In this document: in pieces, positions 3,185 to 57,204 of the stretch
How the letters are laid out: each line of letters begins with the position of its first letter
Numbering within the stretch: position 1 is the stretch's first letter
From: Octopus sinensis
Lineage: Eukaryota
Assembly (NCBI RefSeq): GCF_006345805.1
Contig: NC_043000.1
Location: 73,532,001-73,596,000, forward strand
Reading direction: 5' to 3'
Length of the DNA stretch: 64,000 bases
The notes under the pieces: model-generated
Told to the model about the DNA's origin: nothing
Database searches by the model: none
Seen by the model: the letters and a program-made list of their open reading frames with translations, nothing else
Program-made: the position numbers and the translations under genes

Positions 3185-3246
<62 letters not shown>

Positions 3247-3260
3247 CGGGAAGCTTTATG

Positions 3261-3300
<40 letters not shown>

Positions 3301-3480: not shown

Positions 3481-3530
<50 letters not shown>

Positions 3531-3707: not shown

Positions 3708-3739
<32 letters not shown>

Positions 3740-3744
3740 TATTA

Positions 3745-3790
<46 letters not shown>

Positions 3791-3938
3791 CCATATACAC
3801 ATACACACATACATATATACACACACATACACACACACATATATATATATATACATTTACACACACATTTTTACACATATATATATACACACATACACAT
3901 ACACACACACATATATATATATATATATACATATATAT

Positions 3939-3969
<31 letters not shown>

Positions 3970-4326
3970 CAGTTGCATATATACACATATATATATATAC
4001 ATATATATACATATATACACACAAGCACATACATGCATAAATGTATACATATGTTTATATAAATGCATACACATACACACACTCACGCTCCTCCTTATAT
4101 ACATAAATACATACATGCATACAAACGCATACTCATGTAATAAATAATAAATAATGAATAATAAATAATAGATATATACACATGCAGTTACCCTTTGTAC
4201 AGACGGAAACATACATATAAGCATACACGTATATACCTATCTACACATATGTATATATACATACATACATGCACATACACATAACTCTACATACTTACAT
4301 ATACATAAACACACGAGCGTACACAC

Positions 4327-6544: not shown

Positions 6545-6894
6545 GTGTACGCTCGTGTGTTTACGTATATGTAAGTATGTAGAGTTATGTGTATGTGCAT
6601 GTATGTATGTATATATACATATGTGTAGATAGGTATATACGTGTATGCTTATATGTATGTTTCCGTCTGTACAAAGGGTAACTGCATGTGTATACATATC
6701 TATTATTTATTATTCATTATTTATTACATGAGTATGCGTTTGTATGCATGTATGTATTTATGTATATAAGGAGGAGCGTGAGTGTGTGTATGTGTATGCA
6801 TTTGTATAAACATATGTATACATTTATGCATGTATGTGCTTGTGTGTATATATGTATATATATGTATATATATATGTGTATATATGCACATGTG

Positions 6895-6929
<35 letters not shown>

Positions 6930-7081
6930 GTATATATATATATATATATATGTGTGTATGTGTATGTGTGTATATGTGTGTGTATGTTTATATATGTGTG
7001 TGTATGTGTATGTGTGTATATATATATATATGTGTAAAAATGTGTGTGTATATGTGTATGTGTGTGTGTATGTGTATATGG

Positions 7082-7126
<45 letters not shown>

Positions 7127-7161
7127 TATATAGTATATATATATATATATATATATATATG

Positions 7162-7211
<50 letters not shown>

Positions 7212-7360
7212 ATATATGTACGCTTGTGTGTTTATGTATTGTAGGTATGTAGAGTTATGTGTGTATGTATGTATGTATATATACATATGTGTAAATAGGT
7301 ATATATGGGTATGTTTATATGTAGGTATCCGTTTGTATAATGGGTAACTGCACGTATATA

Positions 7361-10103: not shown

Positions 10104-11040
10104 GTGTGTATGTGTGTATGTGTATATATGTATGAATGTATATGTGTATGTATATGTATATGAATAATATGTATATGTGTATGTATATGTATGTATGTGT
10201 ATGTATGTGTATATGTATATGTGTATATATATTAATTAGTGTATATGTATGGACTAGTCTTCTGTGGGTGTGTTGAGGTATGTATGTGTATGCGTGTATG
10301 TGAATATACGTGAATGTATGTAGATGTAGGCGTGTATGAATATAACTCGTGCGTGTGTGTACGTGTGAGTGTGTGGGCGTGAGTGAGTGCTTGCGTTCGT
10401 ATCAGTAAGTAGATAGATAAACGGAATCTTTAGATATCCCTTGAGACAGGCTGACCGGTCAAGATAAAAATAAAGATATAAACAAAAGTAGTTAATAAAA
10501 TTAAAATAAGAGAATAAAAATGTGTGTGTATGTGTGTGCATGTATATGCATTTGTATATATATGTGCGAGTGGGTATACATATATGTATGTATATGTATG
10601 TATATGTGTATCTGTGTGTACGTACATGGGTATGTGTAGATATATGTAGGTATATGTATATATATATGTATATGTATGTGTACGTATGTATGTATATATA
10701 TATATATGTATGTATATGTGGGTATGTATGTATATGTATAGATATATGTGAATATGCGGGTATGTGTATGTGTATATGTGTATATATATATATGTAGATG
10801 TACAAGTGAGAGTCTCCCCACTTACCTAAAACTCTATTTTTCTATTTATATTTTTTATTTTTTTATTTTTTTATTTTTTAATATTTTTATTTTATTCTTT
10901 TATCTACTTTACCACCGATTCCTTTGACCACTCCCCTAATAATGACAGTTTTGCGCCATGCCTACCCCCAAAAAAGTCCCCCACCACCACCCATTTAAAC
11001 CTGCCTAAATGTATAAATGCCAAAACAACTCTTGTCTACT

Positions 11041-16000: not shown

Positions 16001-16490
16001 TGTATGTTGTCCAACATGCCCATTGAAGTCACCAGCCACAAAGAGAAGGTCCCTGTCGTTCGTCGATGAAGTAGTCTGCAGGAGGGTGTCATTGTATCGG
16101 TCTTTCTGTCCATCAGGTAGCCCTGGCTGAGGGGCATAGGCCGATATAATGGTAGCTAATCCATGATGAAGCACTAATCTAATCTTAAGTATTCTGTCGC
16201 ATACTCTGACTACCTCAATTACCTTATCTACCCATTTTTCAGCGAGAAGTATACCCACACCCCCGACCCCGTCAGTGTTTCCAGCCCAGAAAATCTTGTA
16301 CCTGCGTTCTTTGCCTGTGAGGAACCTAGCAGAACCTCTTCTCCACCTCACTTCTTGGATGTAACACATATCGACACATCTCCGTTCAAGCATCTCAACA
16401 ATCTCACCAGACCTACCTTTCAGTGTGCCGACGTTGAGGGTGCCAATCCTGAGGGTGTGGGAGGTATGTGCCCTAGGGACCTTGGGACGG
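13052..16490 (-). mobile_element. Near full-length decayed RTE-clade LINE (APE + RT), 3' UTR truncated
   Basis: TLNVGTL..QEVRW..GVGI..SAYAPQ..GDFNGHVG; GPSG, QFGFVPGKSTTDAIF, FVDMEKAFD, GVHQGSVLSPLLF, LLYADDL, YLG. Confidence 0.92.
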
Positions 16491-16523
16491 GGGAATATAT
16501 AATATATATACATATATGTATAT

Positions 16524-16560
<37 letters not shown>

Positions 16561-16597
16561 ACACACACACACAACACACAACATATATATATATATT

Positions 16598-17322
16598 GTA
16601 TTTAGGAATGGTCAATTTGCTAGTTTAGTCAATAAAAACACGTGCACTATATAATTGGTGTTAATTTGCTTCAGCGTTATTTATTTATTACATTAATCTT
16701 AATCTTTTTCGGCCAGAGTTCTTTCGTCACACTTCTGTGACCTCATCAGTGCTCCTTTGCTTTCTTCTTTATTATTTGTGTGTCTCTCCTTACTAACGGT
16801 CAGCCATTTTCTATTTTGTATTCTTATTGAATGAGTCTTCATTTGTGCGCATGCGTATACCTTTATGTGTGTCTGTGTTTTGTTAGTGTGGTGTGTGGGG
16901 GGGAGTGCCTGTAATATTTGTATCTCCTGTTTATACACGTCCGTGTAATTTGTTTTTGTTTATTTTTATTTTGTTCATGTGTTTACACCTACTTATTTTT
17001 TTTTGTTGTATTTAGTTAAATTTTTTTAATGTATATAGTTATTACTTCCATTTGTTTCTTATCTGTGTATTTTTTTATTTTATTATGTTTTTAGTTTTGT
17101 TTATATTGTTACCAGTTTATGAGGATCTTATTCTGTCATATGCTGTGTGTGTTTGTGTTGGGGGTGTATGCTAGTGTTCCATTCCAGTTTCCTATTCAGG
17201 CTAGGTTTATCTTCTATCATGTGTGTAGCTTCCATAATTTGTATAATTGTTGCAAATTAACATCAAATATATAATGCGTGTTTTTATTGGCTAAACCGGC
17301 AAAATGACCATTCCTAATACAA
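16598..17322 (-). mobile_element. Miniature 5'-truncated Penelope-like insertion with an inverted terminal segment
   Basis: Minus-strand QIMEATHMIEDKPSLNRKLEW (~17170-17250) resembles a GIY-YIG C-terminus. 16598-16669 and 17252-17322 are ~85% identical inverted copies. Downstream hammerhead-like motif. Confidence 0.6.
16711..16755 (-). ncRNA. Degenerate type I hammerhead motif
   Basis: ggagca-CTGATGA-g GTCAC agaagt GTGAC-GAAA-gaac-TC-tggcc. Stem II good, stem I weak. Confidence 0.55.
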
Positions 17323-24509: not shown

Positions 24510-27330
24510 CATCATCATCATTTAGCGTCCGTTTTCCATGCTAGCATGAGTTGGACGGTTTAACTGGGGTCTGTGAAGCCGGAAGGCTTCATCAGGCCCA
24601 GTCAGATTTGGCAGTGTTTCTACGGCTGGATGCCCTTCCTAACGCCAACCACTCCGTGAGTGTAGTGGGTGCTTTTTACGTGCCACCTGCACAGGTGCCA
24701 GACAGAGCTGGCAAACGGCCACGAACGGATGGTGTTTTTACGTGCCACTGGCACGGGGGCCAGGCGAGGCTGGCAACGGACACGAACGGATGGTGCTTTT
24801 ACGTGCTACCGGCACGGGGCCAGGCGAGACTGGCAACGGACACGAGCGGATGGTGCTTTTAAGTGCCAAATGCACGGGGGCCAGGCGAGGCTGGCAATGG
24901 ACACGAACAGATGGTGCTTTTACGTGCTACCGGCACGGGGCCAGGCGAGACTGGCAACGGACACGAGCGGATGGTGCTTTTACGTGCCAAATGCACGGGG
25001 GCCAGGCGAGGCTGGCAACGGACACGAACGGATGGTGCTTTTACGTGCTACCATTACGGGGGCCAGGTGAGGCTGGCAACGGTCACGAGCGGATGGTGCT
25101 TTTATGTGCCAACGGCACGGGGGCCAGGCGACGCTGGCAACGGACAAACGATCGGATGGTTCGCTTAACCACAGCTGCAATTTCCACTGATGTTGATTTG
25201 GTTTGATTTTGACTTTTCTCACTGGTCTTGCCGGGTCTTCTCACGCACAGCATACTTCCATAGGTCTCGGTCTCTAGTCATTTCCTTGGTGAGACCTAAA
25301 GTTCGAAGGTCGTGCTTCACCACCTCGTCCCAGTTTTTCCTGGGTCTACCTCTTCCACTAGAGTGTGGCACTTTTGCACACAAATATCTTCACCCATTCT
25401 CGTCACATGCCCATACCAGCGCAAACGTCTCTCTTGCACACCACAACTGATGCTTCTTAGGTTCAACTTTTCTCTCAAGGTACTTACACTTTGTCGATTA
25501 TGAACACTGACATTACACATCCATCGGAGCATACTGGCTTCATTTCTTGCAAGCTTACGCATATCCTCAGCAGTCACAGCCCATGTTTCACTACCATGTA
25601 GCATGGCTGTACGTACACATACATCATACAGTTTGCCTTTTACTCTGAGCGAGAGGCCTTTTGTCACCAGCAGGGGTAAGAGCTCTCTAACTTTGCCAGG
25701 CTATTCTTACTCTAGCAGTTACACTTTCAGCACACCCACCCCCCCCCGCACTGACTTGGTCACCTAGGTAGCGGAACTATCAACTACTTCTAATTTTTCT
25801 CCCTGGAACATAGTAGACGTGGTCTCTGCACATTTTCAGTGTTTATTGCTCCTGAGCATCTGCCACAGACAAAAACTATTTTCCTAGTTAGCCTTCTTTT
25901 GACATTGCTACACCTCTTGTGTCCATAGCTTGCACTTGGTGCACCTTATAGAGTTTCTACCTACACCTTTTTTACAGATCGAGCAGGGCCTACTAGGACT
26001 TTGGTTTTGGCTAGATTAATTCTGAGGCCCTTCGATTCTAGACCTTGCTTCCACACCTGAAACTTCTCCAGTTCTGATAGTGACTCAGCAATTAGAGCAA
26101 GGTCATCAGCATAGAGGAGCTCCCAGGGGCATCCTGTCTGGAATTCCTCCGTTATTGCCTGGAAGACTATGATAAATAGGAGGGGACTGAGGACTGAACC
26201 TTGGTGGACCCCCAACCTCTACCCAGAATTCTTCACTGTACTCGTTGCCAACCCTCACCTTACTAGCAGCGTTTCTGTACATGGCTCGCACAGCTCTAAC
26301 TAACCATTCATCTATCCCTAGTTTCCTCATTGACCACAAGATAAGGGACCGGAGAACCCTGTCGAAGGCTTTCTCTATGTCAACAAAAGCCAGGTACAGG
26401 GGCTTATCTTTTGCTAGGTATTTCTCCTGCAGCTATCATACCAGGAATATAGCATCAATAGTACTTCTCCCTGGCACGAACCCAAACTGCATCTCATCTA
26501 AGCTAATTCTCTCTCAAATTAGTTGGGCTATAACCCTCTCCGTAACCATTACCTGATCCAGCAGCTTGATACCCCTATAGTCTAGGGCGTCACCTTTACC
26601 TTTGTAGCAGTTGACTATTATGCTGCTACACCAGTCATTGGGTATGACTCCTTCATGTATCACCTGGTTAACTATACGGGTGAGTAGGCTATAGCCGACA
26701 CTACCAGATATTTTGAGCATCTCTGCAGTAATACCTGATGGGCCTGGGGCTTTCCCTGTTTTCATTCGGCAGACTCTCTTTATCCCATGCATTTTCCTCA
26801 TTCAGCAACCTTTCATAGTGGCGTCTCCAAACCTCTCTCCTTGCATCCTCATTTAGCGCAAGTGAACTGTCATCCTTGCGAACACATTTCTCTCCTACCA
26901 CGTCACGATTCTCTCTCACACACTGTCTTGCAACACGAAATACCTCAATTCTTTCATCCTCACGGCGCAGAACATTGGCAAATTTTCTCTTATCTGCTTC
27001 CCCTCTGGCTAAATACACCTGCCTCCTAGCTTCCCTTTGGTAGTCTGATACACTTCCCTGCTACCACCGTTCTTCCAAGCCTGTTTCTTCCAAGCCTGTT
27101 TCTTTTGCTAATAGCCCTGTCAACAATATTGTTCCACTACCACGTTATTTTGGGTCTTGAGGGGACTTTGCACCAGCCACAAATCTGGGCAGTGGCTTTC
27201 AGCAGGTTGTCCCTTAGAAGCGTCCAGGTGTCTTCTACCCCATGTGTAGCTATACCCCATTCTATTTCGTCAAAGGCTTCAAGTAATATGTCTCTAAAGT
27301 ATATATACTTCATCATGGTCATCATGGTTT
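24510..27330 (-). mobile_element. 5'-truncated RTE LINE with a complete 3' UTR and (GAT)n tail
   Basis: Same family as 13052-16490 (GVHQGSVLSPLLF, LLYADDL, KAPGPSG); catcatcat tail at 24510. Confidence 0.92.
24700..25150. repeat. ~60/61-bp GC-rich minisatellite (~7 units) in the RTE 3' UTR
   Basis: cacga(a/g)cggatggtgctttta(c/a)gtgc...ggggccaggcgag(a/g)ctggcaacgga repeated. Confidence 0.9.
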
Positions 27331-40075: not shown

Positions 40076-40629
40076 ATTACTAAACTATACTTACATACTC
40101 TTCACTAACACATATACATCACTACTACCTAACTGCACTCATTCTTGTGCACAGTGAAACGCATTAACCTATGCATTTAAACTTGTACATTCACATACAT
40201 TTACATACAAACACACACACTTCTAGTACATAAGGGACAATAAACCCAGGTAAACTAGAATAACAAATTTAAAATAAATAAACTGAATGTAATAAAAACT
40301 ATCATAAGATATATAATAATAAATACTAGCATTAAAGACCCGTTGTTGCTGGGTCATAGTGCTAGTGCATGTATATATGTGTATATATATGTGTACATAT
40401 TACATGTACATCTATATATATACATCTACACATAAAATTCAAAATACAAAGTTATATCTTGATATCGCTAGTGATAACAATACTCAAAATATATAACAGA
40501 CTGGAATTGTTAGCCAGTCTCTTGTAATTTCGATCAATCGTATCTTGTCCTCCCTCTTGTATAGAAGTGTGGCTACAATCCAGCCTACCTCTACTTCTGG
40601 GGGGGGGGGGGGCATTTTAAACTTTTATC

Positions 40630-40815
40630 CGGCACGTCCTACATCCCAGATATAAAGGTAAAAATAAAATATTTCCACTTTGCAAGTTCGAGTCGAGTAC
40701 TCCCTTGTACACTCCGTTGACTCGAACCTTGCTTCTATTGTGGCGAATTTACCGCCTCTGATTAGATATCTTTCATAGTCGCACCAAGACACTTTTCGAA
40801 GGTGCTTTTCTCCAT
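40630..40815 (-). mobile_element. Short fragment of an older Tx1-like ORF1
   Basis: YLIRGGKFATIEARFESTE resembles YINRGKRYGTVEVRFTTEE of ORF1 at 44395-44865. Confidence 0.55.
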
Positions 40816-43800
40816 ATTTTATTATTACCCACAAGGGGCGAACATAGATGGGACAACGAATGGGTTTTACAAAAAAGCGAATTTTAAAAATTTACACAAA
40901 ATTACAAAAATAGCAAGAAATCGAATGTTGGAACAGACCGGAAGACATTACGGGTGGAGTGGGTGCGGGTTTAGCTCGGACTCCACGAGCCCCGCCTCCC
41001 CACTGATACTTTTGGTTTCGTTTGGTTTACATTTATGTTGTATCATTCACTCGCAACTTTCGTGCTACATCTTTCCATCGTTCTTCATACACTCTCTTAG
41101 TCAGGCATATTCTCTCCAGCCCTATCTTCCTTTTCAGGTGAAAGATGAAATAATTCATCAAACCAGGGCCGGAGATGAACTTGCCTGACTCTCTTCCATA
41201 TCACCTCTTTCGCAATTGCTACTACAACGAGAAAACGAAACTTACCTTCATTCGCGAGGAAATCCGGTGGGTCAATTTTTGTAATCGACTCAGTCGACAG
41301 CTGTACTCTTCCTGTACTTGACAACAGCTGTTCGGCATAAACCCACACCTCAGACACGTCCGGACAATGAACAATAGCGTGCGGGACAGTTTCCCTATCC
41401 CGCCCGCATCTTCGACATATCGGACTGTCTTGGCCACCGTGCCTTGCGAGTTTATCCCGAACAGGTAGAGCTCCTCTGTAGCATTGCCATGCCAGAGACT
41501 TCTGGAAGTTGTCCAGTGTCTTCGGCTTGAACGTACTTCGGTACAGACTGGCCAGCTGATTATCGTCGAGACCTAGGGTTTCCCCCAAGGTATCTTCACA
41601 TTCCGCCTCTATCAACCCTCTATAGAAGAATGTGGTGGAAACCCCCACCGCAGGCGTTGCCCGAGCGACGGAATAGCAGGAGAGCCTTGCGACACTCCGT
41701 GTACCAAGTGCCAAGTTTCGATCTACAATTCAGCTAGGTTTCCCATCCACCGAAACTAGTGAACTTGGGAAACATCAGTTTTGCTAGCGAAGACCACACC
41801 CGTTCACCATCCAGGTAGAGCCACAGATGTCAACCTCAGCGCATGTTTGCGCATCATCAGCCAAGGCATCCCTAGCCCACCCTTTAACGGTTCTTGACAG
41901 CAAGTAGAGCGTTTCACAAGTCGTTTCCCGCCCTTCCACAAGAAGTAGAAGAGCTGTCTTTCCAACTTGATCAACCACGAATCAGGACAAGGAACGACGG
42001 AAAGGCGGTAGGTGATAACCGATGCGATAAACACATTGGCCACCTCCGCCCTCCCTTTCAGGGATAGCCACCGCCAAGACCAGGTCTTGGTTACTGCAGC
42101 CACCCTGCTCGATACCTCGTCCCAATTCTTCTCTATGTGGAGGTCTGGACCGAACCAGACCCCTAGCAATTTAATCGGACCCTCCGTCCAACGTCCCACA
42201 ACGCTGTCGGGAGGCATCGACTTGCCTCTCCAGGTGCCGAGTTGCAAGCCGACTGACTTTTTGCGATTAACTTTTGCTCCTGTCACCGTCTCGTAAACCT
42301 CTGTGGCCTTGCCTACTTTATGTAGGTGGTCCATTTCGGTTACGATGATGGTGATGTCATCCGCGTACGCTGACACTGATTTTCCACTACCTGGCTGTCT
42401 CGGGATGCCGCTCAGTTTACGCAGTAATGGCTCAAGAGCCATCGCATTCAAAAGCAGGGAGAGCGGACACCCTTGACGAACCGAGCGCTTGATTTTGAAC
42501 GGCTTCGACAAGAAGCCGTTCACCCGAACTACCGAGTCGATGTTATCATAAATTTGCATAATCCACCTGAGGAAGCCAAGGCTCAGCCCGAACTGTGCCA
42601 GGGCAGATACCAGGTAACGATTGTCGACCCTATCAAATGCTTTAGATTGGTCTAAATGGACCAGTGCCCCACCCTTGCCAGAATCGTTATTAAACCCCTC
42701 TATAGTGTACCGCATAAGATGGAGATTATCCTGAATGGTTCTGCCCGGAACGGCACATGTCTGTGCCTTTCCGATCAGACCATCTGCGACACGCGCCAAT
42801 CTTTTCGATAACACTTTGGCCAAAATCTTCAACTCTGTGTTTAGCAGAGTGATGGGCCTGAAATTATCTCGCCCCGATAAGCGCGGCAGCCCGTCGAGTA
42901 GGTCCGTAAAGGCCCTCCTCCTATCCAGTCCGCCGCACTCACCGAAAAGCTGAGCGAAGTGCTCCTGAAAGGCCTCACGCATCTCCTCGTTGGTTCGTCA
43001 AAGATCGAATCGTGGCATCGTTACCATGCTGAGCTTCCAGCACTCGGGCCCATCTCACGGCGTTGATTCCTTCATAACCCATATGGCGGATCCTAGCCCT
43101 GACAATGCGGCCCATGTGTTTGGCCTCGAGGTGCTGGTTTAACACCAGTCTCTTGGACGCCACCTGAGCAGCAGAGCCAGTTTTCAAGGCTTCCTCTTCC
43201 AGCTATATCTAATTGACTCGAACTTGATGGCTCGTTTGAGGGCGTACCACCATTTGTTATTAATGATGGTACCAGATAGTGCCCTCTGAATTATAGTCCT
43301 AATCCGGTCTTTGTACTCCTTAATCGCCAAAAGGGACGTATTAAGTTTCCAGTAACCGGATCCTCTATTTTTAACCTTATCTATGTCAAGCTTACAGGTG
43401 ACCATTTTATGATCACTGTAGCTGATCGGGTAAAACTGTGGACGCTTAGCTATTTTTCGCTCTACTTTTCTAATTAGTATTCTATCTAAATATGACCTGG
43501 AAGATCCGTCGCTGTTTGACCATGTCCACAATTGAGCGTTCGGAAATTCCAGCCTATAAGGATCTGCTAGCTCAAAGCGGCTTAGCAGTTCTATGAAGCC
43601 ACTCTTACCTTTTCTATCTGAACGCGAGCCAACACAATCTACATCCGCTTTGCAAATTGTGTTAAAGTCTCCTAGCACAACTAATGAATGCGAAGTACCA
43701 AGAAAGTTTTCTAGTTCACGAAAATAATCACTTTGCCCTGTACTGTTGGGTGCGTAAATTGCAACCAGTCTGATAACTTTACCGTTACTGAACGTCAAAT

Positions 43801-45303
43801 CCATGACGACCAGCCTACCTTCTGAATCTGCAAAAATTAACTTTTTCTCAGAAACCCGGTTTCTTTTCATTAGGACCAACACCCCACTTCTGCCAGTAGG
43901 ACTGCCAGGAGAGAAAAAACTCTCGTAGCCGTCAAACAGCGGGAGTAGACCTCTTGGCCCCTCTAACCGGGTTTCTGTAGCAACAATAACATCTAAATTA
44001 TGCGACCTGATATCATGCAGGAAGCGACCTTGCTTCTAGCCTGCTCCCAGGCCGCGCACATTCAAACAACCAACATAAATGCAATCCATTACTTACCTTT
44101 ATATCAGTGGTTCTCTTTTTCTTTTTTGTTTAACTCTTTTTCAGGGCCTCGTGGGGGAGTCTGACGTAGGCCCTCGAATATATGTGGAGATGTCACATCC
44201 ATTCTTAGTGGGCCTACGTCATGGAAGAATTCGGACTTTATCCGCCCGTAATCCTTCCGGCCTATTCTGTAAACTACATAGTCGTTCTTTTTCCCTATTT
44301 TCTCTACTTTGGCCATAGCTGCCAATACGTTCCCGAGTCTGTTGTTTGATGCCTTAACGGCCATATATGAGTTCATCGACTCTCTTTTCTTCTTTTAGTT
44401 CACTCTGGGAGGAGTGGTTTCCGTTTTTCTTTTTTTTCTGATGATTTTTGCCCACCCCTCCTCATTTTTCTTTTCCTCGCTCTTATTTTCCTCCGCCGCT
44501 GGTTCTGTTGTCTCCGTCACCTCCACACCTTCAGTCGTCCCTTCTGCCACCAGACATTCGGCATCTGCCTCTGGGGGAATTCTCGATGTTCTTTTCCATC
44601 TATACAAGGGGAGGAGAACAATGTTCTCCGCTTTAATCGGCTCCATAGATAGTTTTTTTGCTATCTCCTCTGTAGTAAAACGCACCTCCACTGTGCCGTA
44701 TCTCTTTCCTCTGTTAATGTAAGTTATCTTGTCCATTAATGGTTTTAGATAATTCTCTATTTTTTTTTCTTCAATTTTTTGTATCATTTTTGTCGTCGTG
44801 TTAAATGTCTTATAGATTATTCTTTTTTTTTCTATTTCATCGTGTTTTTGGACGTTTGTGACCACTCACTTCCGTGCCCTCTTTTGTGACACAGTCCGCA
44901 TATTTTTTCAAGTCTTCCACGTTTATTTTTTTGATCTTTTTACCGGCCACTTCAGAGAATTTTTTCGCTGGAGCTGGTGCTGGTGCGACATCGCCTCTTT
45001 TTTCCTTGGCGACACCGCCTCTTTTTTCCTTGGCGACATCGCCGGAGACTCCTCTTCACTCGTCACCGGAGAATAAGAGATGGGGGACTCCATCTCGAAC
45101 AGTTGGCTTAACAAGCCCTTGGTAATTCAAGATAAAGGATATTTTTCCCCCACGGAGGGGGGAACACCAACGCGAAGTCCTCGCGCGAAGGCTGACTTCA
45201 ACAGTTAGACAGCAATAGACAAAAACAGGTAGACAAACAGTAGAGAATAACAGAGATAATAATACGACGGCAAAAATATATTAACTTACAATAAACGCAA
45301 ATA
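40816..45303 (-). mobile_element. Tx1/L1-clade LINE, full-length layout (5'UTR-ORF1-ORF2-3'UTR) with stops and internal deletions
   Basis: ORF2 starts MDCIYVGCLNVRGL; APE (ATETRL, AIYAPN, LGDFN, YLDRI, SDHK); RT (FRPITLLN, LDQSKAFDRV, QGCPLS, AYADD); CRRC..H..HC. Bracketed by gcttttctccat at 40804-40815 and 45304-45315. Confidence 0.9.
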
Positions 45304-45315
45304 GCTTTTCTCCAT

Positions 45316-47166
45316 GTAATTTCTTTATTACCCACCAGGGGCTACGAAGAATGGCGGACATAACAAAACATGGGAGACATATAACAATATGATTAAATTT
45401 ATGAGCAAATGAATATTAAAATGAAAAAATGATAATATGAAAGCGATGCTAACGGCCCCCTCCGCCAGCATCACTTACCTGTCCTTTTGTTTTCACTGTC
45501 ACCTGAATGTTCATTCCCAATACGAAGACCATCCATATCCATTCTTACTCCGAAACCCTCCTCCATACTTTCCACGAATTGTTCGCTCATTCTTGTATCT
45601 TTCACCTCCCAATTCTCCCTTCCACACCTCAACACAAACTCATCTATATTCTTCTTTTCCAGCACTGCATATCTGGTCCCATCCATTTCATACCATTCAT
45701 ACTCCTCCATTACCCTTTTAACTTCTTTCTGTTCAGTCACAATATAAAGGATATTTTTCCCCCACGGAGGGGGGAACACCAACGCGAAGTCCTCGCGCGA
45801 AGGCTGACTTCAACAGTTAGACAGCAATAGACAAAAACAGGTAGACAAACAGTAGAGAATAATACGACGGCAAAAATATATTAACTTTGGGTTCGTTTTC
45901 AAACTCTTGTCTGTCTGTATTATTATTTTTCTTTTGTTTTTTTGTTGGGTGGGTTCACCGTCTGCAGGGGAAGGGTGGGATTCAGAGGGTGCGGGTGGTG
46001 TTGGGGTGGGTTGGGGCTTCGCACAGTTTTTCTTTTTCTTTCTTTTTCTCTTTCTTTCTTTTTCTCTTTCTTTCTTTTTCTCTTTTTTCTTCCTTCTTCC
46101 CACTCTTGTTGCATCTCTTCTTCTGTCGTTTCTTTTTCCGTTTGGTTCTCTTTGGTTTCTTCCTCTTTTGGGGCTTTCGCGACGATTTCCTTTTCTTTTT
46201 CCTTTGGTGGGGGAGGGCAGTAGGCTCTTATGTGACCCCTCTGGCCACACTTGTAGCACCTGGGCGCCCTACCCTCCACCCACACTCTCATAATAATATT
46301 CCCAGTTTTTATACTGTCCGTAAGCTTTTCTATAACTTCCGCCTCCGTCTGTATATTCATTTCTAGTGTGGCACCTCTCACGCCTTCATATTTCATAATG
46401 GCGTGGAGAATGTCCACTTTATCTTCATTTCCTTTGATAACCGCAGCCGTTATTAATTCGCCCTCTAGGTGTGGAGGTATTCCCACCACCCTAATTCTGG
46501 TGGTCCTTCTATTCAAATACGAGGGGAACAAGTAAATCTTTTCTGTACTCACCACCTTGGCTGCTATATTCCTGGCTGGCTGCTTTCTCACTTTTAAATT
46601 GTACCGTTATGGTTCCATATTCTAATCCTTTTGTCATGTACACAATTTCTTCTCCTGTCTGTTTGAGAGCCTCTTCAATTGCTTCCATGTTAATCACTTC
46701 CATTTTTCCACCTCCATTCATAAATACTTTATATTTAATGGTTCTACGATGGAACCAGTCTCCGCGCCCTGCTGGAGGCAACAGCTCTACCTCTCCGTTC
46801 TCCTCCTCCTTCGTGAACTCCTGGAAGTCCGTCAACTTAGCCAGGTCTACCTCTTTTTCTGTTGACTTCTTCGTTATACCTGCGTAGGTGCTTTCCATTT
46901 TTTCCACCGCCAACTCCTCCTCAGATGTCGACGAATTTTCAGAGAAATTTCTCCCTTCCATCTCATCCGTTTGGTAGAGGCGGCTCATAGTCGCCTCAGA
47001 CCGAAAAACTGCCTCCCGAACAGACAACGTGCAACGCACAGAACCAGTGCGACACGAAACCGCACCAACCGACGTTCCAATTCCGCAACAACCCCAATTC
47101 ACTTTTTGTTCTTTTTTCCTTTCTAACCGAATTTCACAGAGCGCAAAAAACACCGCCGTTCAATCT
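45316..47166 (-). mobile_element. ORF1-only Tx1-derived unit U1 (with a 140-nt insertion)
   Basis: ORF1 with RRM-like and CYKCGQRGHIRAYC motifs ending RTGK*; no ORF2; 3' end gtgggtaataaag. Confidence 0.85.
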
Positions 47167-48878
47167 GATTTCTTTATTACCCACGAGGGGCTACACAGAG
47201 GGGACACTACAAACATTGGGGACATAGAACATCACAATTACAAAGAATGAAAAATGAATTTTGAAAAATGATATTATGAAAGTAATGCTAACATCTCATT
47301 CCGCTAGCATCACTTACCTGTCCTTCGTACCCTATCATCTATTGTTCTCCCCAATTTCAATACACATATTCTCCAAGTCCATAGCATATAATTTTTAAAA
47401 ATAATTCTTCGTCTTATCCCCAACTACCCACTCCTCCACTTTCACATTTCTATTTTCGCACCACACTAACAGTCCATCCATTTCTTCCCTCTTCACCATT
47501 GCATATTTCCAGACCCCCTTTTCATACCCTAGATAACCCTCTAACATGTCTTTTATGTCCTCTCTTTCTTTTTTTTAACCTACACAGAACAAAGCGCCCG
47601 GATTCGGTTTCAGTCTCTTGTCTGTGTGTATTACTTTTTTGTTTTCTTGTTGGAGGGGAGCGGGTGAGTTCACTGTCTGCAGGGATAGGGTGGGACTCAG
47701 AGGATGTGGGTGGTGTTGGATTGGATTGGTGTAGCGTGTTGTTTACTTTTCTCCTCTTTTTTTCCTTCCTTCTTCCCACTCTTGCTGGATTTCCCCTTCT
47801 TCCGTCGTTTCCTTCTCTGTCTGGATCTCTTCTTTATTCTCTTCCTCCCTTGGGGGTTCCGCAACAATTTCCTTTTCTCTTGGTGGGGGAGGGCAGAAGG
47901 CTCTTATGTGACCCCTCAAGCCACACTTATAGCACCTGGGCGCCCTGCCCTCCACCCACACTCTCATAATCACGTCTCCCAATCTGATGTTTTCTGTTAG
48001 GTCCACCAGTACCTCGTTCTCTGCCTGCACATTCAGTTCCACTGTCACGCCTCTCCAGCCCTCGGTCTTAACCGAGGCATGGAGGATGTCCACTTCCGCC
48101 TCGTGGCCGCTAATCACAGCCGCCACTATCCACTCAGCCTCAACGTTTGGGGGCACTCCCTCGACCCTTACTCTAGTAATTTTTCTATTTAGATACGTAG
48201 GCAAAAGTATTACCTTCTCGGATTTCACCGCCTTCGCCGCCATCTTCCTTGCTGCCTTCTCACTTTTGAACTGTACTACTACAGTACCATATTTTGAACC
48301 TCTCGAAAGAAATTCGATTTCCTCTTCCGTTCTTCTTAGCGCCTCATTTATCCATTCCATATTCACCACTTCTATCTTTTTCTTTTCGCTTGCGAACACC
48401 CTGTATATGATGGTCCTTTTCTCGTACCATTCCTTTCTCTTGGTGGTGGTGTGCCAGTTCGACCTCACCGCTGTCCTTCCTCATATACCTCTGAAACCTG
48501 GCAATTTTTCTAGGTTTATTTCCTTTTCCTGTGCCGTCTTCTTTTTTGCAACTCCTGCGTACGTTTTCCTGTTTTTTATCTCCACATTATTTACATCACC
48601 GATTTGCTCGTCTTCAGAGGTCGATGTCTCCGACAAGTTCTCAAATATCCATTCCTCCTCCGACTCCTCCACTAGGGAGTGGTCGTCCATTTCCCTCTGT
48701 CTGACAGGCCGAAAAGGCCGCCCGAACAGAAAAAGTGCAACGCGCAGAACCAGCGAAACGCGAAACCGCATCAACGACGTTCAAAATTCCGCAATAAAAA
48801 TAATTCAGTTTTTGTTCTCTTTTCCTTTTTACCGAACTTTACAGAGCGCAAAAAAACACGACCGTGATGTGAAAATCT
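47167..48878 (-). mobile_element. ORF1-only unit U2 (divergent subfamily)
   Basis: ORF 47743-48468 is clearly homologous but diverged (SRGSKYGTVVVQFKSEKAAR, CYKCGLRGHIRAFC); same termini. Confidence 0.85.
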
Positions 48879-48879
48879 T

Positions 48880-50548
48880 GATTCTTTATTACCCACAAGG
48901 GGCCAACGAAGAGGGGGACATTACAAGACATGGGGACATAGAACATTATAATTAAATTTATGAAGGATGAATTGTTACATGAAAAAATGATAATATGAAA
49001 GCGATGCTAAAGGCCCCATCGGTTAGCATCACTTACCTGTCCTTTGGTTTTCGCCGTCACTCCAATTTCCAATAATAAAACCGATATTCTCCATTCTCAC
49101 TTCAAAACGATTCTCCATATTTTTCACGGATTCATCACTCAGACTCATCTCTTCCACCTCCCAATTCTCCCTTTCGCACCTTCTCATAAACTCATCTATT
49201 CGCTCCTTTTCAATCACTGCACACCTGGTCACACCTGAATCGCACCATGTATACCCTTCCATTACCCTTTTAACCTCTTCCTGTTCTGTCATAATACAAA
49301 TGTTCGGCCTGGGTTCGCTTTCAGTCTCTTGTCTGTCTGTGTTAATTTTTTTTTGTTTTCTTGTTGGAGGGGAGCGGGTGGGTTCACTGTCTGCAGGGGA
49401 AGGATGGGATTCAGAGGGTGCGGGTGGTGTTGGGGGGTTGGGGCTTCGCACAGTTTTTCTTTTTCTTTCTTTTTCTCTTTTTTCTGCCTTCTTCCCACTC
49501 TTGTTGCATCTCCTCTTCTGTCGTTTCCTTTTCTGTTTGTTCTCTTTAGTTTCTTCCTCTTTTGGGGCTTCCGCAACGATTTCCTTTTCTTTTTTTTGGT
49601 GGGGGAGGGCAGTAGGCTCTTATGTGACCCCTCTGGCCACACTTGTAGCACCTGGGCGCCCTACCCTCCACCCACACTCTCATAATAACATTTCCAGTTA
49701 TACTGTCCGTAAGCTTTTCTATAACTTCCGCCTCCGTCTGTATGTTCATTACTAGTGTGGCACCTCTCACGCCTTCATATTTCATAATGGCGTGGAGGAT
49801 GTCCACTTTATCTTCATTTCCTTTGATAACCGCAGCCGTTATTAATTCGCCCTCTAGGTGTGGAGGTATTCCCACCACCCTAATTCTGGTGGTCCTTCTA
49901 TTCAAATACGAGGGGAACAAGTAAATCTTTTCTGTACTCACCACCTTGGCTGCTATATTCCTGGCTGCTTTCTCACTTTTAAATTGTACCGTTATGGTTC
50001 CATATTCTAATCCTTTTGTCATGTACACAATTTCTTCTGTCTGTTTGAAAGCCTCTTCAATTGCTTCCATGTTAATCACTTCCATTTTTCTACCTCCATT
50101 CATAAATACTTTATATTTAATGGTTCTACGAAGGAACCAGTCTCCGCGCCCTGCTGGAGGCAACAGCTCTACCTCTCCGTTCTCCTCCTCCTTCATGAAC
50201 TCCTGGAAGCCCGTCAACTTAGCCAGGTCTATCTCTTTTTCTGTTGACTCCTTCGTTATACCTGCGTAGGTGCTTTCCATTTTTTTCACCGCCAACTCCT
50301 CCTCAGATGTCGACGAATTTTCAGAGAAATTTCTCCCTTCCATCTCATCAGTTTGGCAGCGGCGGCTCATAGTCGCCTCAAACAGAAAAACAGCCTCCCG
50401 AACAGAAAACGTGCGACGCACAGAACCAGTGCGACGCGAAACCGCACCAACCGACGTTCCAATTCCGCAACAACCACAATTCACTTTTTGTTCTTTTTTC
50501 CTTTTCAACCGAATTTTACAGAGCGCAAAAAACACCGCCGTTCAATCT
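48880..50548 (-). mobile_element. ORF1-only unit U3 (chimeric 3' third)
   Basis: ORFs 49546-50535 and 49029-49451 are joined by one frameshift. Confidence 0.85.
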
Positions 50549-50565
50549 CCTCTTTTCTCTACATT

Positions 50566-52249
50566 GTAATTTCTTTATTACCCACCAGGGGCTACGAAGA
50601 ATGGCGGACATAACAAAACATGGGAGACATAGAACAATATGATTAAATTTATGAGCAAATGAATATTAAAATGAAATATGATAATATGAAAGCGATGCTA
50701 ACGGCCCTCTCCGCCAGCATCACTTACCTGTCCGTTTGTTTTCACTGTCACATGATTGTTCATTCCCAATACGAAGACCATCCATATCTATTCTTACTCC
50801 GAAACCCTCCTCCATTTTTTCCACGAATTCATCGCTCATTCTTGTATCTTTCACCTCCCAATCTCCCCTTTCACACCTCAACACAAACTCATCTATATTC
50901 TTCTTTTCCAGCACTGCATATCTGGTCCCATCCATTTCATACCAATCATACTCCTCCATTACCCTTTTAACTTCTTTCTGTTTAGTCATAATATAAATGT
51001 TCGGCCTGGGTTCGTTTTCAAACTCTTGTCTGTCTGTATTTTTCTTTTGTTTTCTTGTTGGAGGGGAGCGGGTGGGTTCACTGTCTGCAGGGGAAGGGTG
51101 GGATTCAGAGGGTGCGGGTGGTGTTGGGGTGGGTTGGGGCTTCGCACAGTTTTTCTTTTTCTTTCTTTTTCTCTTTTTTCTGCCTTCTTCCCACTCTTGT
51201 TGCATCTCCTCTTCTGTCGTTTCCTTTTCTGTTTGTTTCTCTTTAGTTTCTTCCTCTTTTGGGGCTTCCGCAACGATTTCCTTTTCTTTTTCCTTTGGTG
51301 GGGGAGGGCAGTAGGCTCTTATGTGACCCCTCTGGCCACACTTGTAGCACCTGGGCGCCCTACCCTCCACCCACACTCTCATAATAACATTTCCAGTTCT
51401 TATACTGTCCGTAAGCTTTTCTATAACTTCCGCCTCCGTCTGTATGTTCATTACTAGTGTGGCACCTCTCACGCCTTCATATTTCATAATGGCGTGGAGG
51501 ATGTCCACTTTATCTTCATTTCCTTTGATAACCGCAGCCGTTATTAATTCGCCCTCTAGGTGTGGAGGTATTCCCACCACCCTAATTCTGGTGGTCCTTC
51601 TATTCAAATACGAGGGGAACAAGTAAATCTTTTCTGTACTCACCACCTTGGCTGCTATATCCTGGCTGCTTTCTCACTTTTAAATTGTACCGTTATGGTT
51701 CCATATTCTAATCCTTTTGTCATGTACACAATTTCTTCTGTCTGTTTGAAAGCCTCTTCAATTGCTTCCATGTTAATCACTTCCATTTTTCTACCTCCAT
51801 TCATAAATACTTTATATTTAATGGTTCTACGAAGGAACCAGTCTCCGCGCCCTGCTGGAGGCAACAGCTCTACCTCTCCGTTCTCCTCCTCCTTCATGAA
51901 CTCCTGAAGCCCGTCAACTTAGCCAGGTCTATCTCTTTTTCTGTTGACTCCTTCGTTATACCTGCGTAGGTGCTTTCCATTTTTTCACCGCCAACTCCTC
52001 CTCAGATGTCGACGAATTTTCAGAGAATTTCTCCCTTCCATCTCATCATTTGGCAGCGGCGGCTCATAGTCGCCTCAAACAGAAAAACAGCCTCCGAACA
52101 GAAAACGTGCGACGCACAGAACCAGTGCGACGCGAAACCGCACCAACCGACGTTCCAATTCCGCAACAACCACAATTCACTTTTTGTTCTTTTTTCCTTT
52201 TCAACCGCAACCGAATTTTACAGAGCGCAAAAAACACCGCCGTTCAATC
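50566..52249 (-). mobile_element. ORF1-only unit U4
   Basis: ORF 50720-51646 (308 aa) intact to RTGK*; 5' part has single-base frameshifts. Confidence 0.85.
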
Positions 52250-52267
52250 TCCTCTTTTCTCTACATT

Positions 52268-53504
52268 GTAATTCTTTATTACCCACCAGGGGCTACGAAG
52301 AATGGCGGACATAACAAAACATGGGAGACATAGAACAATATGATTAAATTTATGAGCAAATGAATATTAAAATGAAATATGATAATATGAAAGCGATGCT
52401 AACGGCCCTCTCCGCCAGCATCACTTACCTGTCCGTTTGTTTTCACTGTCACCTGATTGTTCATTCCCAATACGAAGACCATCCATATCTATTCTTACTC
52501 CGAAACCCTCCTCCATTTTTTCCACGAATTCATCGCTCATTCTTGTATCTTTCACCTCCCAATTCTCCCTTTCACACCTCAACACAAACTCATCTATATT
52601 CTTCTTTTCCAGCACTGCATATCTGGTCCCATCCATTTCATACCAATCATACTCCTCCATTACCCTTTTAACTTCTTTCTGTTTAGTCATAATATAAATG
52701 TTCGGCCTGGGTTCGTTTTCAAACTCTTGTCTGTCTGTATTTTTCTTTTGTTTTCTTGTTGGAGGGGAGCGGGTGGGTTCACTGTCTGCAGGGGAAGGGT
52801 GGGATTCAGAGGGTGCGGGTGGTGTTGGGGTGGGTTGGGGCTTCGCACAGTTTTTCTTTTTCTTTCTTTTTCTCTTTTTTCTTCCTTCTTCCCACTCTTG
52901 TTGCATCTCCTTCTTCTGTCGTTTCTTTTTCTGTTTGGTTCTCTTTAGTTTCTTCCTCTTTTGGGGCTTCCGCGACGATTTCCTTTTCTTTTTCCTTTGG
53001 TGGGGGAGGGCAGTAGGCTCTTATGTGACCCCTCAGGCCACACTTGTAGCACCTGGGCGCTCTACCCTCCACCCACACTCTCATAATAATATTTCCAGTT
53101 TTTATACTGTCCGTAAGCTTTTCTATAACTTCCGCCTCCGTCTGTATGTTCATTTCTAGTGTGGCACCTCTCACGCCTTCATATTTCATAATGGCGTGGA
53201 GGATGTCCACTTTATCTTCATTTCCTTTGATAACCGCAGCCGTTATTAATTCGCCCTCTAGGTGTGGAGGTATTCCCACCACCCTAATTCTGGTGGTCCT
53301 TCTATTCAAATACGAGGGGAACAAGTAAATCTTTTCTGTACTCACCACCTTGGCTGCTATATTCCTGGCTGCTTTCTCACTTTTAAATTGTACCGTTATG
53401 GTTCCATATTCTAATCCTTTTGTCATGTACACAATTTCTTCTCCTGTCTGTTTGAGAGCCTCTTCAATTGCTTCCATGTTAATCACTTCCATTTTTCTAC
53501 CTCC

Positions 53505-53505
<1 letters not shown>
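52268..53505 (-). mobile_element. ORF1-only unit U5, 5'-truncated at (TA)n
   Basis: ORFs 52806-53612 and 52421-52906; same 3' end as U4. Confidence 0.85.
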
Positions 53506-54651
<1,146 letters not shown>

Positions 54652-54679
54652 ATATATATATATATATGTATATATATCT

Positions 54680-54792: not shown

Positions 54793-56694
54793 TGTGGGAT
54801 GACGTCAGCAGCTGGGGAGCTGACCGGAACTTGGGGCTGACCGGAAGAGGAAGGGGCAGGAGTGACGCGCTCGCAGGCAGGGCAGGATTGGGTCTTTTTC
54901 GATCGAGGTAACCAAGGGAGTGAGTCGCGTGAGCACGTTGCTATGGTAGGGGAGAAGCAGCTGCTATTTCTAGTGTTCGGGTCGGGCTGCGTTGAAGGGT
55001 CCATTACCGTTGTAAGGTCTCCGTCGAGTGAAGAGAAGGTAGGTGTCCTTACTTCAAATCTCCCGCATACCCCACAAGCTATTTCGGCGCTTCATATAAG
55101 ACGTCACCACGGTGGCAGTGAAAATCAGGATTGCCAGCGCCATTATCAAACCCTTTAATGGTGAGGGCGATGTAGTGGCCTGGATTCGTAAAATCAGGCT
55201 GATGGCAAGACTGCAAGGCATAAGCGACGTGGCAAGTCTTATGGTGCTGTATTTGGAAGGGAGCGCGTTGATGCTATATTTTGAGATGGACGAGGAAGAA
55301 CGTCTGAGTGAGGAGAAGATAGAGAAACGCCTGAGAGATACTTACACCGAGTTTTTGCTAAGCTGGGTACGATTAGATGGACGGGAGGACAGGTGGACGA
55401 ATACGCGGCAGAAGTGCGAAGGTTAGCCACGCTGGTTGGGTTTACAGGAGAAGGGCTGGAGAGAGCAGCGCGTCTGGCGTTCGTAAATAGTTCCCCGATG
55501 AGGTAGGGATTCGCCTGCAACAACTGCCCGGGAGTAAAAAGATGGCGCTGAGTGAACTTGTGACTCAAGCCCGCGTGTTGACGCGACACACTGGGCAGAA
55601 GGCGATAGCGATGGCGGTTACGGAGGTGCGTAAAGACGGACAACGACCGGAGAAAGACGTGCAGAAGCCTACCGTGCAACGACAGCGGCCGTTCTCAGGT
55701 CGGTGTTTTAGATGTCAGGGGTCGTAAATGGCGAGGGAGTGCACGCAACTGGGGCCCGTTTGCTATCGATGCAAGCAGACAGGGAAACGACCGTGGGGAA
55801 GTTGCTGCCTCTCGAACTTTCTCCGCAAACGAGTAGAGGCGCTTTTGGAGACGCTGCCCGTAATTGATGTGGAGGCCGAGGGGAAGACGTTCAATGCCCT
55901 CGTGAATACGAGTTGCACGACGACCCTCGTGACTTCAAGGGTGACGAAGAAATGGAATGGGGCAAGTAGCGTCCGGGCGGTCGACGGCAGCGAAATCTGT
56001 TGCAAAGGCAGCAGCAAGGTAGAGATAGTGGTTCGAGGCGCGACGCTAAGGCTGCAGGTAATTGTGGCTGAACGCGTGATAAACGGGGTTGATGTGGTGA
56101 TGGGGATGGACGCCATCAACCGCCTCGGTGGCGTCAGTATTGTGGGAGAGGAGGTCACGTTCGGAAGCGTGGGGGCGTCGTGCACTGCGAGTCAGGATCG
56201 CCAGAGAGAGCAGAGCCCCGCGAGGGACTGCGCCGCTTACACCATCGGGGACAAAGATTTTCAGGCGGCGTTCGATAGAGTGGTGATGGAAGGACGAGCT
56301 CCCGATGCTGAAAAACAGAGTGAGCTGCTACCAGCATACCCTGAAATGTCACGCCAGGGTCGAGTGGAGAGGTGGATCGAGGAAGGGGTCCTTGTCCCGT
56401 GGGAGGAGGAGGTAGTGGGCGGAGTGCTACCCCTGATGGCGGTGGTGCAGCCTACGAAGGGAAAAGTCAGACCGGTGCTGGACTTCAGGGAGCTAAACCA
56501 GCATATATCGTGTCACACGGGAGGTGAGGCGACGGACGTTTGTGGTGAGTCGCGTGAGCACGTTGTTATAGTAGGGGAGAAGCAGCTGCTATTTCTAGTG
56601 TTCGGGTCGGGCTGCGTTGAAGGGTTCATTACCGCTGAAAGGTCTCCGTCGAGCGAGGAGAAGGTAGGTGTCTTTATTTCGAATCTCTCGCATA
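54793..56694 (+). mobile_element. Internally deleted Gypsy-like LTR retrotransposon (5' LTR, gag, protease, RT start, half of the 3' LTR)
   Basis: 5' LTR 54793-55076 (tgtggg...cccaca). gag KPFNGEGDVVAW; Cys knuckles CFRC and CYRC; protease-like LVNTSC; RT KVRPVLDFRELN. 56545-56694 repeats 54920-55069. Confidence 0.85.
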
Positions 56695-57204
56695 TTTTTA
56701 ATATAATTCTGTTATATATGTGCATGCGTGTGTTATGTTGATGTTTTTATGTTTACCTGTGTGCATGCATCTTTGTGCACAAATATATATGAGTTCATAT
56801 GCATATTTATTTATATACTCTTTCATTTTATTAATCTCCTGCACATATATGCTCAATTAAAATATGCAAGACCCACTATATACTTGACATTTTCGTATTC
56901 TTGTCAGCTGCATTCAAATATGCACCTACATATCCTAATCAATAATGGTTGATAAGTAAGCCCCAACTGGTCAAGCATTACAATGGCTTTTTCCCAGTTT
57001 CTCTCCATTCTGAATCATAACAACTTATGTATCTCTCACTAATCCAATAAGAATCATCCATAGAATTTAGCTTCTTCTATTATTAAATTTATTTATTTTT
57101 TATATTTTTATTTTTCTATTCGTTTATCTGTTTAATAATTATAATGTTTTGTATTTGTATGTAGAATATCTTCAAATATTAAAAACCTACCTATCAAATA
57201 GAAT

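Follow-up and report, generated by a model that had tools for sequence, protein, structure and literature searches.

We describe a head-to-tail array of retroelement units that encode the first open reading frame (ORF1) of a long interspersed nuclear element (LINE) and lack the second (ORF2). It lies in a 64,000-nt window of the Octopus sinensis genome (NCBI RefSeq assembly GCF_006345805.1, contig NC_043000.1, positions 73,532,001 to 73,596,000; coordinates below are positions in this window). A direct-repeat scan and self-BLAST place it on the minus strand at approximately 45320 to 53525, with a tandem period of 1676 to 1716 bp, and detect no second copy within the 64 kb; Tandem Repeats Finder, whose period limit of 500 is below the unit period, reported nothing. 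The plus strand here is T/C-rich, and coding sense is wholly on the minus strand, as are all array features given below. With the conserved 3' tails as boundaries, the minus-strand order is U5, U4, U3, U2, U1, three filler bases, a full element with EN (endonuclease) and RT (reverse transcriptase) domains, and U0. Between 45319 and 53506 there are four complete units of ~1.7 kb (U1 to U4) and one 5'-truncated unit (U5), so that the array of the initial annotation is real, with one of its five units incomplete. Each unit is built of a 5' untranslated region (UTR) of ~200 nt, an ORF1 of ~450 codons, and a 3' UTR of ~190 nt. As that annotation had claimed, the array holds no EN or RT: a tblastn search with the intact ORF2 of a related octopus element matched the window only at 41036 to 44092 and at two unrelated LINE fragments. 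We interpret the units as a HAL1/HeT-A-like, non-autonomous, ORF1-present LINE lineage of Octopus that shares its 3' end with an ORF2-bearing relative, and place the probability of this reading at about 0.72.

The units fall into at least three sequence types. Type A is represented by U1, U4, and U5, which are mutually 95 to 97% identical. U5 (52271 to 53506) is truncated at about ORF1 codon 93 against a (TA)n tract, and its ORF1 remnant, with one frameshift, stops at 52421. In U4 (50569 to 52270) ORF1 has its ATG at 52067 and its stop at 50720, carries six 1-nt deletions in the N-terminal half, and keeps a 308-aa open stretch. Four lesions disrupt the ORF1 region of U1 (45319 to 47167; ORF1 from 46988 to 45471): 4 nt are duplicated, an AAG tract is expanded by 32 nt, 10 nt are deleted, and the linker carries a 139-nt insert (45749 to 45887). 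U3 (48881 to 50568), with ORF1 from 50370 to 49029 and 274 codons open from the ATG, contains the second type, a B-type module of C-terminal domain and 3' UTR that is 76% identical to its A-type counterpart. The third type is U2 (47168 to 48880), a divergent subfamily whose ORF1 region (48690 to 47310) contains stops and frameshifts; it is ~66% identical to all other window units and 82% identical to an intact O. sinensis copy. An earlier division into at least two subfamilies, U2 versus the rest, thus holds for U2 and misses the B-type module. Transposable element copies in the window are 89 to 94% identical to other O. sinensis copies.

The encoded protein begins with an acidic N terminus, continues with two RNA recognition motifs (RRMs) and a single CCHC knuckle, and ends, after a basic/proline-rich linker, in a small C-terminal domain. 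An AlphaFold2 model of U3 ORF1 (pLDDT 85) shows two tandem RRM folds followed by the CCHC knuckle, and its Foldseek matches are the tandem-RRM proteins IMP3, HuD, U2AF65, and hnRNP A1. The Pfam zf-CCHC match is weak (E 0.0012), and the CCHC motif itself is conserved. On the predicted fold, the unit ORF1 is a Type I ORF1 protein (ORF1p), as that term is applied to the L1 elements of plants and to Tx1, where it denotes RRM plus CCHC (PMC5203782); this is consistent with Tx1. The RRM and CCHC assignments made at the outset for a ~450-aa ORF1 are therefore borne out, with no copy in the window encoding the whole protein intact. Relatives were collected by an exhaustive HMMER search, as a word-indexed protein search returned zero matches and then one, probably because K/E-rich words saturated its candidate list. 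HMMER recovered 215 relatives, the named ones coming from O. sinensis, Octopus vulgaris, and Octopus bimaculoides and annotated as uncharacterized or CCHC-domain proteins. ORF1 fragments also appear as host proteins in Octopus gene sets (XP_036368115.1, XP_036361568.1, and CAI9742213.1), under labels such as "uncharacterized protein" and "EPM2A-interacting 1-like."

Immediately 3' of U1 lies the full element (40816 to 45303), a defective autonomous-type copy. Its 5' UTR precedes an ORF1 remnant (45099 to 44019) from which ~100 aa, including the CCHC knuckle, are absent. ORF2 (44092 to 41036) encodes an APE endonuclease (43882 to 43184; Pfam Exo_endo_phos, 2.4e-7), an RT (42982 to 41804; RVT_1, 1e-27) with 82 aa deleted, and a C-terminal zinc-binding domain (41714 to 41097; zf-RVT, 1.5e-9), and is followed by a 3' UTR and tail. 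Compared with intact relatives, the element lacks those parts of ORF1 and RT as well as 27 nt of the tail and carries stops; it is dead, so that an ORF2-bearing element does adjoin the array as first described, in defective form. An APE-type endonuclease, an RT, and a C-terminal zinc-binding domain are the domains of L1/Tx1 ORF2s, and Tx1 membership is here a putative assignment from domain architecture only. None of the ORF2 homologue names carries a Tx1 label; these homologues are L1-like proteins of fish, plants, and fungi, 23 to 41% identical and either unnamed or called "hypothetical."

A target site duplication (TSD) of 12 bp, ATGGAGAAAAGC, brackets the full element without a mismatch, its left copy at 45304 to 45315 and its right copy at 40804 to 40815. 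In minus-strand order the left copy is preceded by TAC (45316 to 45318) and, before that, by the U1 tail, and we conclude from the TSD that the element inserted through target-primed reverse transcription, 3 nt downstream of that tail. The insertion point coincides with the 5' edge of U0 (40520 to 40815), a sixth element located 3' of the full element: an old ORF1 fragment (RRM region, approximately codons 95 to 205) of another Tx1-like family, with a best match of 43%.

Units and full elements are related at the nucleotide level only in their last 45 to 60 nt, low-complexity stretches aside. The minus strand has six matches to the motif CCCCYBGTGGGTAATAA, where 0.08 would be expected; they end all five units as well as the EN/RT element (40822) and thereby confirm the shared terminus reported initially. 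In U4, the tail block occupies 50569 to 50630 (...TGTCCsCC..TCTTCGTwGCCCCTnGTGGGTAATAAAGAAAT); it has no poly(A) and contains the polyadenylation signal AATAAA. Equivalent tails end at 52271, 48881, 47168, 45319, and 40816, and full-type tails of both O. sinensis and O. vulgaris match the U3 tail at 92 to 93% identity. The same terminus is found on a third class of element. We fetched five genomic loci (L001 to L005), all chosen for encoding ORF1-like proteins, and 6 of the 18 tRNA-type short interspersed nuclear element (SINE) copies in them end in the shared tail (~55 nt, ...TGTCCCCTCTGTGTTTAGCCCCTTGTGGrTAGTAAAGAAAT). Three element classes on one tail are the classical signature of a "stringent" LINE, whose ORF2 protein (ORF2p) chooses its templates by their 3' end.

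The tail-bearing SINE copies are L001:6009-6165, L001:18091, L002:494, L004:35971, and, on the minus strand, L004:18655 and L004:6227. Other copies of that SINE body end in different tails, which suggests tail exchange, and the 64-kb window holds no copy of the body. We also considered the shared terminus as a host target sequence and rejected this, since the solo L001 copy described below carries the terminus between its TSDs.

A second conserved feature, confined to the ORF1-only elements, is a hairpin of 17 bp within which the ORF1 stop codon falls (GGTAAGTGA...). It lies at 50688 to 50728 in U4, and at 52389 to 52429, 48997 to 49037, 47278 to 47318, and 45439 to 45479 in the remaining units. 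Among six copies from the window, L001, and L002, 3 of the 17 pairs show compensatory changes, and the hairpin is conserved across all ORF1-only types. The GTAAGT at the ORF1 stop was considered as a splice donor, as in a SpIRE-like origin; this was rejected, since every copy retains the hexamer, which makes up the 5' arm of the hairpin.

ORF1-only copies, looked for outside the window, are present at other O. sinensis loci. A solo element of 1598 bp at L001 (9458 to 11055) is flanked by a 19-bp TSD, and joining its flanks restores a continuous SINE and so reconstructs the empty site. It shares the stop-codon hairpin, ends without poly(A) in a related tail (...GGATAAATAAAGAAAT), and has no EN/RT within 20 kb. 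At L002 (2495 to 4184) a U2-like unit of 1690 bp, with an intact 463-codon ORF and a 16-bp TSD, sits in the 5' UTR of the first of four head-to-tail full elements that are only 75 to 89% identical to each other. ORF1 homologous to LINE ORF1, the absence of ORF2, dispersed TSD-flanked copies, precise 3' ends, and 5' ends that vary by up to ~20 nt together describe a non-autonomous LINE with the hallmarks of target-primed reverse transcription. The frame of the intact L002 unit reads through the hairpin (L002:4010-4057, ...GKVSDAGGGGR*) and does not stop at the TGA inside GGTAAGTGA; the ORF1 C terminus therefore differs between subfamilies though the hairpin is kept. Upstream of the first element of this array (L002:2400-2480), an apparent degenerate tail remnant (...CCCCCATGTGACTAAAAT...) suggests an older, almost wholly lost element at the head of the array.

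The autonomous relatives are best preserved in O. vulgaris. L003 contains at least 3.5 full elements with a period of 5278 bp and 99.1 to 99.6% identity, including one intact autonomous copy (ORF1 of 470 aa, ORF2 of 1132 aa). An assembly gap of 100 Ns inside this array (L003:19185-19284) implies that true array length may be underestimated in assemblies. In L004, two full copies, the upstream one truncated, share an orientation but do not abut, being ~1.5 kb apart with other sequence in between; L005 is a separate family, and Logan contigs (L006 to L009) carry decayed ORF1 fragments. Since full elements are clustered head-to-tail in L002, L003, and L004, clustering is a property of the whole group and not of the half-elements alone. 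The loci are interstitial in chromosome-scale assemblies, with L002 at 71 of 110 Mb and L003 at 32 of 40 Mb.

A neighbor-joining tree of the RRM-CCHC core groups the four ORF1-only types into one clade (bootstrap 95.5) and the full-element ORF1s into a separate clade (90.5), with 30 to 37% ORF1 identity between the two groups. The nearest sister sequences are two proteins from O. bimaculoides, P0006 and P0012. All ORF1-only types share a private 5' UTR, the hairpin, a linker (PQPTPTPP..HPSPAD), and a 3' UTR, all of them absent from full elements; together with the single clade, these parts make one loss of ORF2 followed by diversification the most economical reading. On sparse sampling, dN/dS between ORF1-only subfamilies of this monophyletic clade is 0.16 to 0.23, far below 1: 0.23 for A-type versus the L002 unit (0.15 in the RRM-CCHC core; dS about 1.6), 0.22 for the L001 type versus the others, and 0.16 for window U2 versus the L002 unit (dS 0.61). 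Values of 0.56 to 0.77 among the near-identical A-type array copies reflect mostly post-insertion decay, as expected. The initial proposal of long-lived, HAL1-like elements whose ORF1 is under selection without ORF2, and whose ORF1 phylogeny would be informative, accords with the dispersed TSD-flanked copies, the low dN/dS, and the ORF1-only clade set apart from autonomous-element ORF1.

The subfamilies could instead have arisen separately, each from an autonomous element with the same ORF1 through internal deletion or template jumping, so that selection acted in the parents. HAL1 is said to be a recurrent L1 derivative, which would be a precedent. ORF2 loss has also been recurrent in Drosophila telomeric LINEs (PMC13534243), and P0006 and P0012 could belong to elements of either architecture. 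All four types nevertheless have the private 5' UTR, hairpin, 3' UTR, and ORF2-less junction in common and form the well-supported clade just described, and ORF1 falls inside it in none of the nine ORF2-bearing copies (window and L002 to L005). U2 and the L002 unit, furthermore, are both ORF1-only and diverged at dN/dS 0.16. We therefore regard separate origins as improbable, though the strongest competitor of a single ORF2 loss.

Within the array, the units differ in how they came to lie side by side. U3 and U4 are ~100% identical over the 5' three quarters and 76% identical over the C-terminal domain and 3' UTR, whereas the 3' quarter of U4 is 100% identical to U5 over the last ~750 alignment columns. 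U4 thus joins the 5' part of U3 to the 3' part of U5 and is sited between both; it arose through unequal crossing-over, not insertion. Modules have recombined between subfamilies in U3 and also in the 3' UTR of the L002 unit. The 139-nt insert of U1 is 92% identical to 45137-45287, in the 5' UTR of the adjacent full element, and has a 9-nt microhomology (TTTATmTTG) at its right boundary, which suggests gene conversion or template switching; we had considered it as a small mobile element, an idea rejected because it is a piece of a full-type 5' UTR.

Such exchange invites the view that the array is a nascent satellite, a local tandem duplication of one internally deleted LINE whose half-elements are not independently mobile. 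The crossover origin of U4 fits, as does the 99.1 to 99.6% identity of the L003 array, consistent with recent unequal exchange, and part of the account by McGurk and Barbash (bioRxiv 10.1101/158386) has transposable element dimers seeding satellites. Simple tandem duplication, however, accounts for U4 only. U2 (66%) lies between units that are 91% identical to each other, neighboring subfamilies are 66 to 76% identical, and the junctions are unlike, with U3 and U4 starting ~20 nt further 5' than U1 and U2 having a 5' end of its own. ORF1-only copies also stand between TSDs at unrelated loci, and we consider a satellite origin very unlikely. The array-forming habit ascribed to these elements is accordingly real, in a form that is not special to half-elements and owes U4 to unequal crossover.

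Several observations weigh against the reading of a mobile ORF1-only lineage. None of the five window units has an intact ORF1; open stretches span 214 to 329 aa, and the lesions are private to each copy. The claim that long open frames are kept here does not stand, as the five local copies are decayed or of uncertain integrity, and we regard the window copies as relics, not active masters. A composite of the N-terminal part of U3 and the C-terminal part of U4 gives an open 450-codon frame, the only such composite that is open. A surplus of 1-nt indels further suggests imperfect assembly in this repeat. Beyond the window array, the ORF1-only loci examined amount to three: L001, L002, and the decayed Logan contigs. 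We found no autonomous element whose ORF1 closely resembles that of the units, and when and how ORF2 was lost is therefore deduced indirectly. At the level of RNA structure, the tail offers a predicted hairpin of 4 bp without covariation, its conservation being one of sequence. Finally, the three TSD-defined insertion sites and their flanks have no common nick-site motif; targeting to resident elements is thus argued from adjacency and orientation at a handful of loci.

The indels raise the question of whether the array is, in whole or in part, a mis-joined or expanded repeat in the assembly. Over 1222 aligned bases, U3 and U4 differ by only 5 substitutions and by 13 indels, most of which are 1-nt deletions in short homopolymer runs. 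The pattern resembles long reads left unpolished more than it does biology; a part of the frameshifts may therefore be assembly errors, and the frameshift calls are unreliable. Also compatible with an artifact are the assembly gap in the comparable O. vulgaris array and a near-perfect palindrome (53551 to 54671; ~500-nt arms, 95 to 99% complementary, 83-nt spacer) that adjoins the truncated 5' end of U5. Units that differ by 3 to 34% cannot, however, be copies of one read-derived unit, and the same architecture recurs in two other assemblies. An artifactual array is thus slightly less probable still than a satellite. The palindrome itself includes tracts of (TA)n and (GA)n and may be either a foldback element or an artifact of assembly from long reads.

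Purifying selection on ORF1 and the AATAAA signal in the tail would also suit a host gene that was domesticated from ORF1 and now forms a tandem cluster. Yet the copies are TSD-flanked, dispersed, decayed, and found among LINEs, with every local one broken, and subfamilies together with a tail shared by a LINE and a SINE are traits of mobile elements. Domestication is accordingly the explanation to which we give the least credence, next to none.

Returning to the non-autonomous lineage, its ORF2p is most likely supplied by the autonomous L1/Tx1-like family with which it shares a tail. The Pol II transcript of each unit would be translated into ORF1p, which would coat that same RNA. The ORF2p of the autonomous relative would then recognize the shared tail, as in "stringent" LINE/SINE pairs, and target-primed reverse transcription would start exactly at ...AATAAAGAAAT, without poly(A), leaving the new copy flanked by a TSD of 12 to 19 bp. 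ORF2 would have been lost once, after which the lineage split into subfamilies with ORF1 under purifying selection. The relationship looks like parasitism rather than a pair of obligate halves because the partner owns an ORF1, and for the same reason the term "bipartite system" in the initial annotation is too strong.

On this reading, the window array grew by two routes. In the first, members of the superfamily, without change of orientation, inserted beside or inside the termini of residents, as exemplified by the full element 3 nt past the U1 tail and by the interleaved subfamilies U3, U2, and U1. The second is unequal crossover, through which U5 and U3 gave rise to U4. We infer both trans-mobilization of the units and tail-directed targeting. 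A bolder and distinctly tentative proposal is that the superfamily prefers to integrate where a resident relative ends, or a few nucleotides from that point. The recognition of the tail by which RNA templates are chosen could also direct this integration, and self-extending arrays would result. These may be same-orientation, interstitial assemblages of ORF1-only parasites, autonomous elements, and fragments of unrelated families, and the targeting might involve recognition of tail DNA or RNA-DNA pairing. Rfam and tRNA scans of the 64-kb window were empty, so there is no small-RNA gene target at the array junctions.

The remainder of the window contains pieces of other retroelements at 1895 to 2671, 8303 to 9421, 14367 to 15062, 15911 to 16615, 26172 to 26759, and 55728 to 56741. 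Two encode APE endonuclease, three encode RT or RT C-terminal regions from unrelated LINEs, and one, of long terminal repeat (LTR) type, is a gag/aspartyl-protease ORF on the plus strand just past the array. Long "ORFs" at 2931 to 4147, 6717 to 7286, and 10254 to 10805 do not represent genes: they are (TA)n, (CA)n, and (ATAC)n microsatellites with I/Y/T/H-rich translations, a kind of tract in which the window abounds.

According to a 2018 survey, the ORF1-present non-autonomous LINEs comprise only HeT-A (Jockey), HAL1 (L1), and Ag-Sponge (CR1) (PMC5786205), and the octopus lineage is a rare fourth, independent case. As with HAL1, it is a derivative of the L1 superfamily that has kept ORF1, lost ORF2, and would spread by target-primed reverse transcription using the ORF2p of a partner. 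HAL1, by contrast, has the mammalian Type II ORF1p (coiled coil, RRM, and C-terminal domain) where the octopus protein is Type I, with two RRMs plus CCHC. HAL1 also ends in poly(A), the end that a "relaxed" L1 uses, whereas the octopus units have no poly(A) and a specific 45- to 60-nt tail shared with partner and SINE. Further differences are that the ORF1 of the octopus units is only ~30 to 37% identical to that of their partner and that they form mixed head-to-tail arrays.

The arrays themselves resemble those of HeT-A, TART, and TAHRE, in which ORF1-only and ORF2-bearing elements lie head-to-tail in the same orientation. The octopus arrays are likewise mixed, U5-U4-U3-U2-U1-Full-U0 in the window and one unit with four full elements at L002, and in both systems 5' ends are variable and 3' ends complete. 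In the HeT-A system, ORF1-only lineages can diversify into further ORF1-only lineages (PMC13534243), a second point of resemblance to the octopus lineage as interpreted here. HeT-A differs in belonging to the Jockey clade, in its gag-like ORF1, in being added to chromosome ends without TSDs, and in its telomere function; the octopus arrays are interstitial, their TSDs measure 12 to 19 bp, a solo copy lies in a SINE, and the 64-kb window contains no TTAGGG array.

"Stringent" LINE/SINE pairs, such as eel UnaL2/UnaSINE1 and zebrafish ZfL2, share a 3' tail (PMC4176376), and here too a specific non-poly(A) tail is carried by an autonomous LINE and its passengers, a subfamily of the tRNA-type octopus SINE included. 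The octopus passenger differs in being 1.7 kb long, probably Pol II-transcribed, and protein-coding, and tail recognition by ORF2p is putative. With the Tx1 group (Xenopus Tx1L; Keno, Kibi, Koshi, Mutsu, and Dewa), the full elements have in common the APE endonuclease, RT, C-terminal zinc-binding domain, and Type I ORF1p. Classic members use one defined target sequence, whereas the three TSD-defined octopus targets (CAGAAAYGTTAGCACGCCG, GGATGTGATATAATGA, and ATGGAGAAAAGC) differ. An insertion-made dimer later expanded by unequal exchange, which forms part of the account of McGurk and Barbash, has counterparts in U4 and the 99% identical L003 array; relative to that part of their account, the octopus neighbors differ in often being other subfamilies or classes (half-element, full element, or third family).

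In an annotation of recently active O. vulgaris LINEs, "L1-Tx1" is the sole label from the L1 superfamily (PMC13282606). L1-Tx1 families appear in recent octopus repeat studies, which do not mention half-elements or arrays (PMC13282606, PMC9115989), and a consensus for the units may already stand in repeat libraries under another label. Annotation of cephalopod genomes can mistake ORF1-only units of 1.7 kb and their arrays for genes or for truncated L1-Tx1 copies.

The lineage bears on an open question, namely what ORF1p contributes in cis and why a LINE parasite should pay to keep ORF1. To this the octopus case adds another ORF1 type, an end formed by a specific tail and not by poly(A), and three tiers of elements (autonomous LINE, half-LINE, and SINE) on one tail, a set in which tail recognition and the cis-preference of ORF1p become directly testable. 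Its ORF1-only lineages and head-to-tail arrays mirror Drosophila telomeres in an animal with telomerase-type repeats, which may point to a broader connection of self-targeting with the loss of ORF2. If true, tail-directed targeting would be a non-telomeric counterpart of the HeT-A/TART/TAHRE arrays, and self-targeting, array-forming LINEs would be predisposed to spawn durable ORF1-only lineages.

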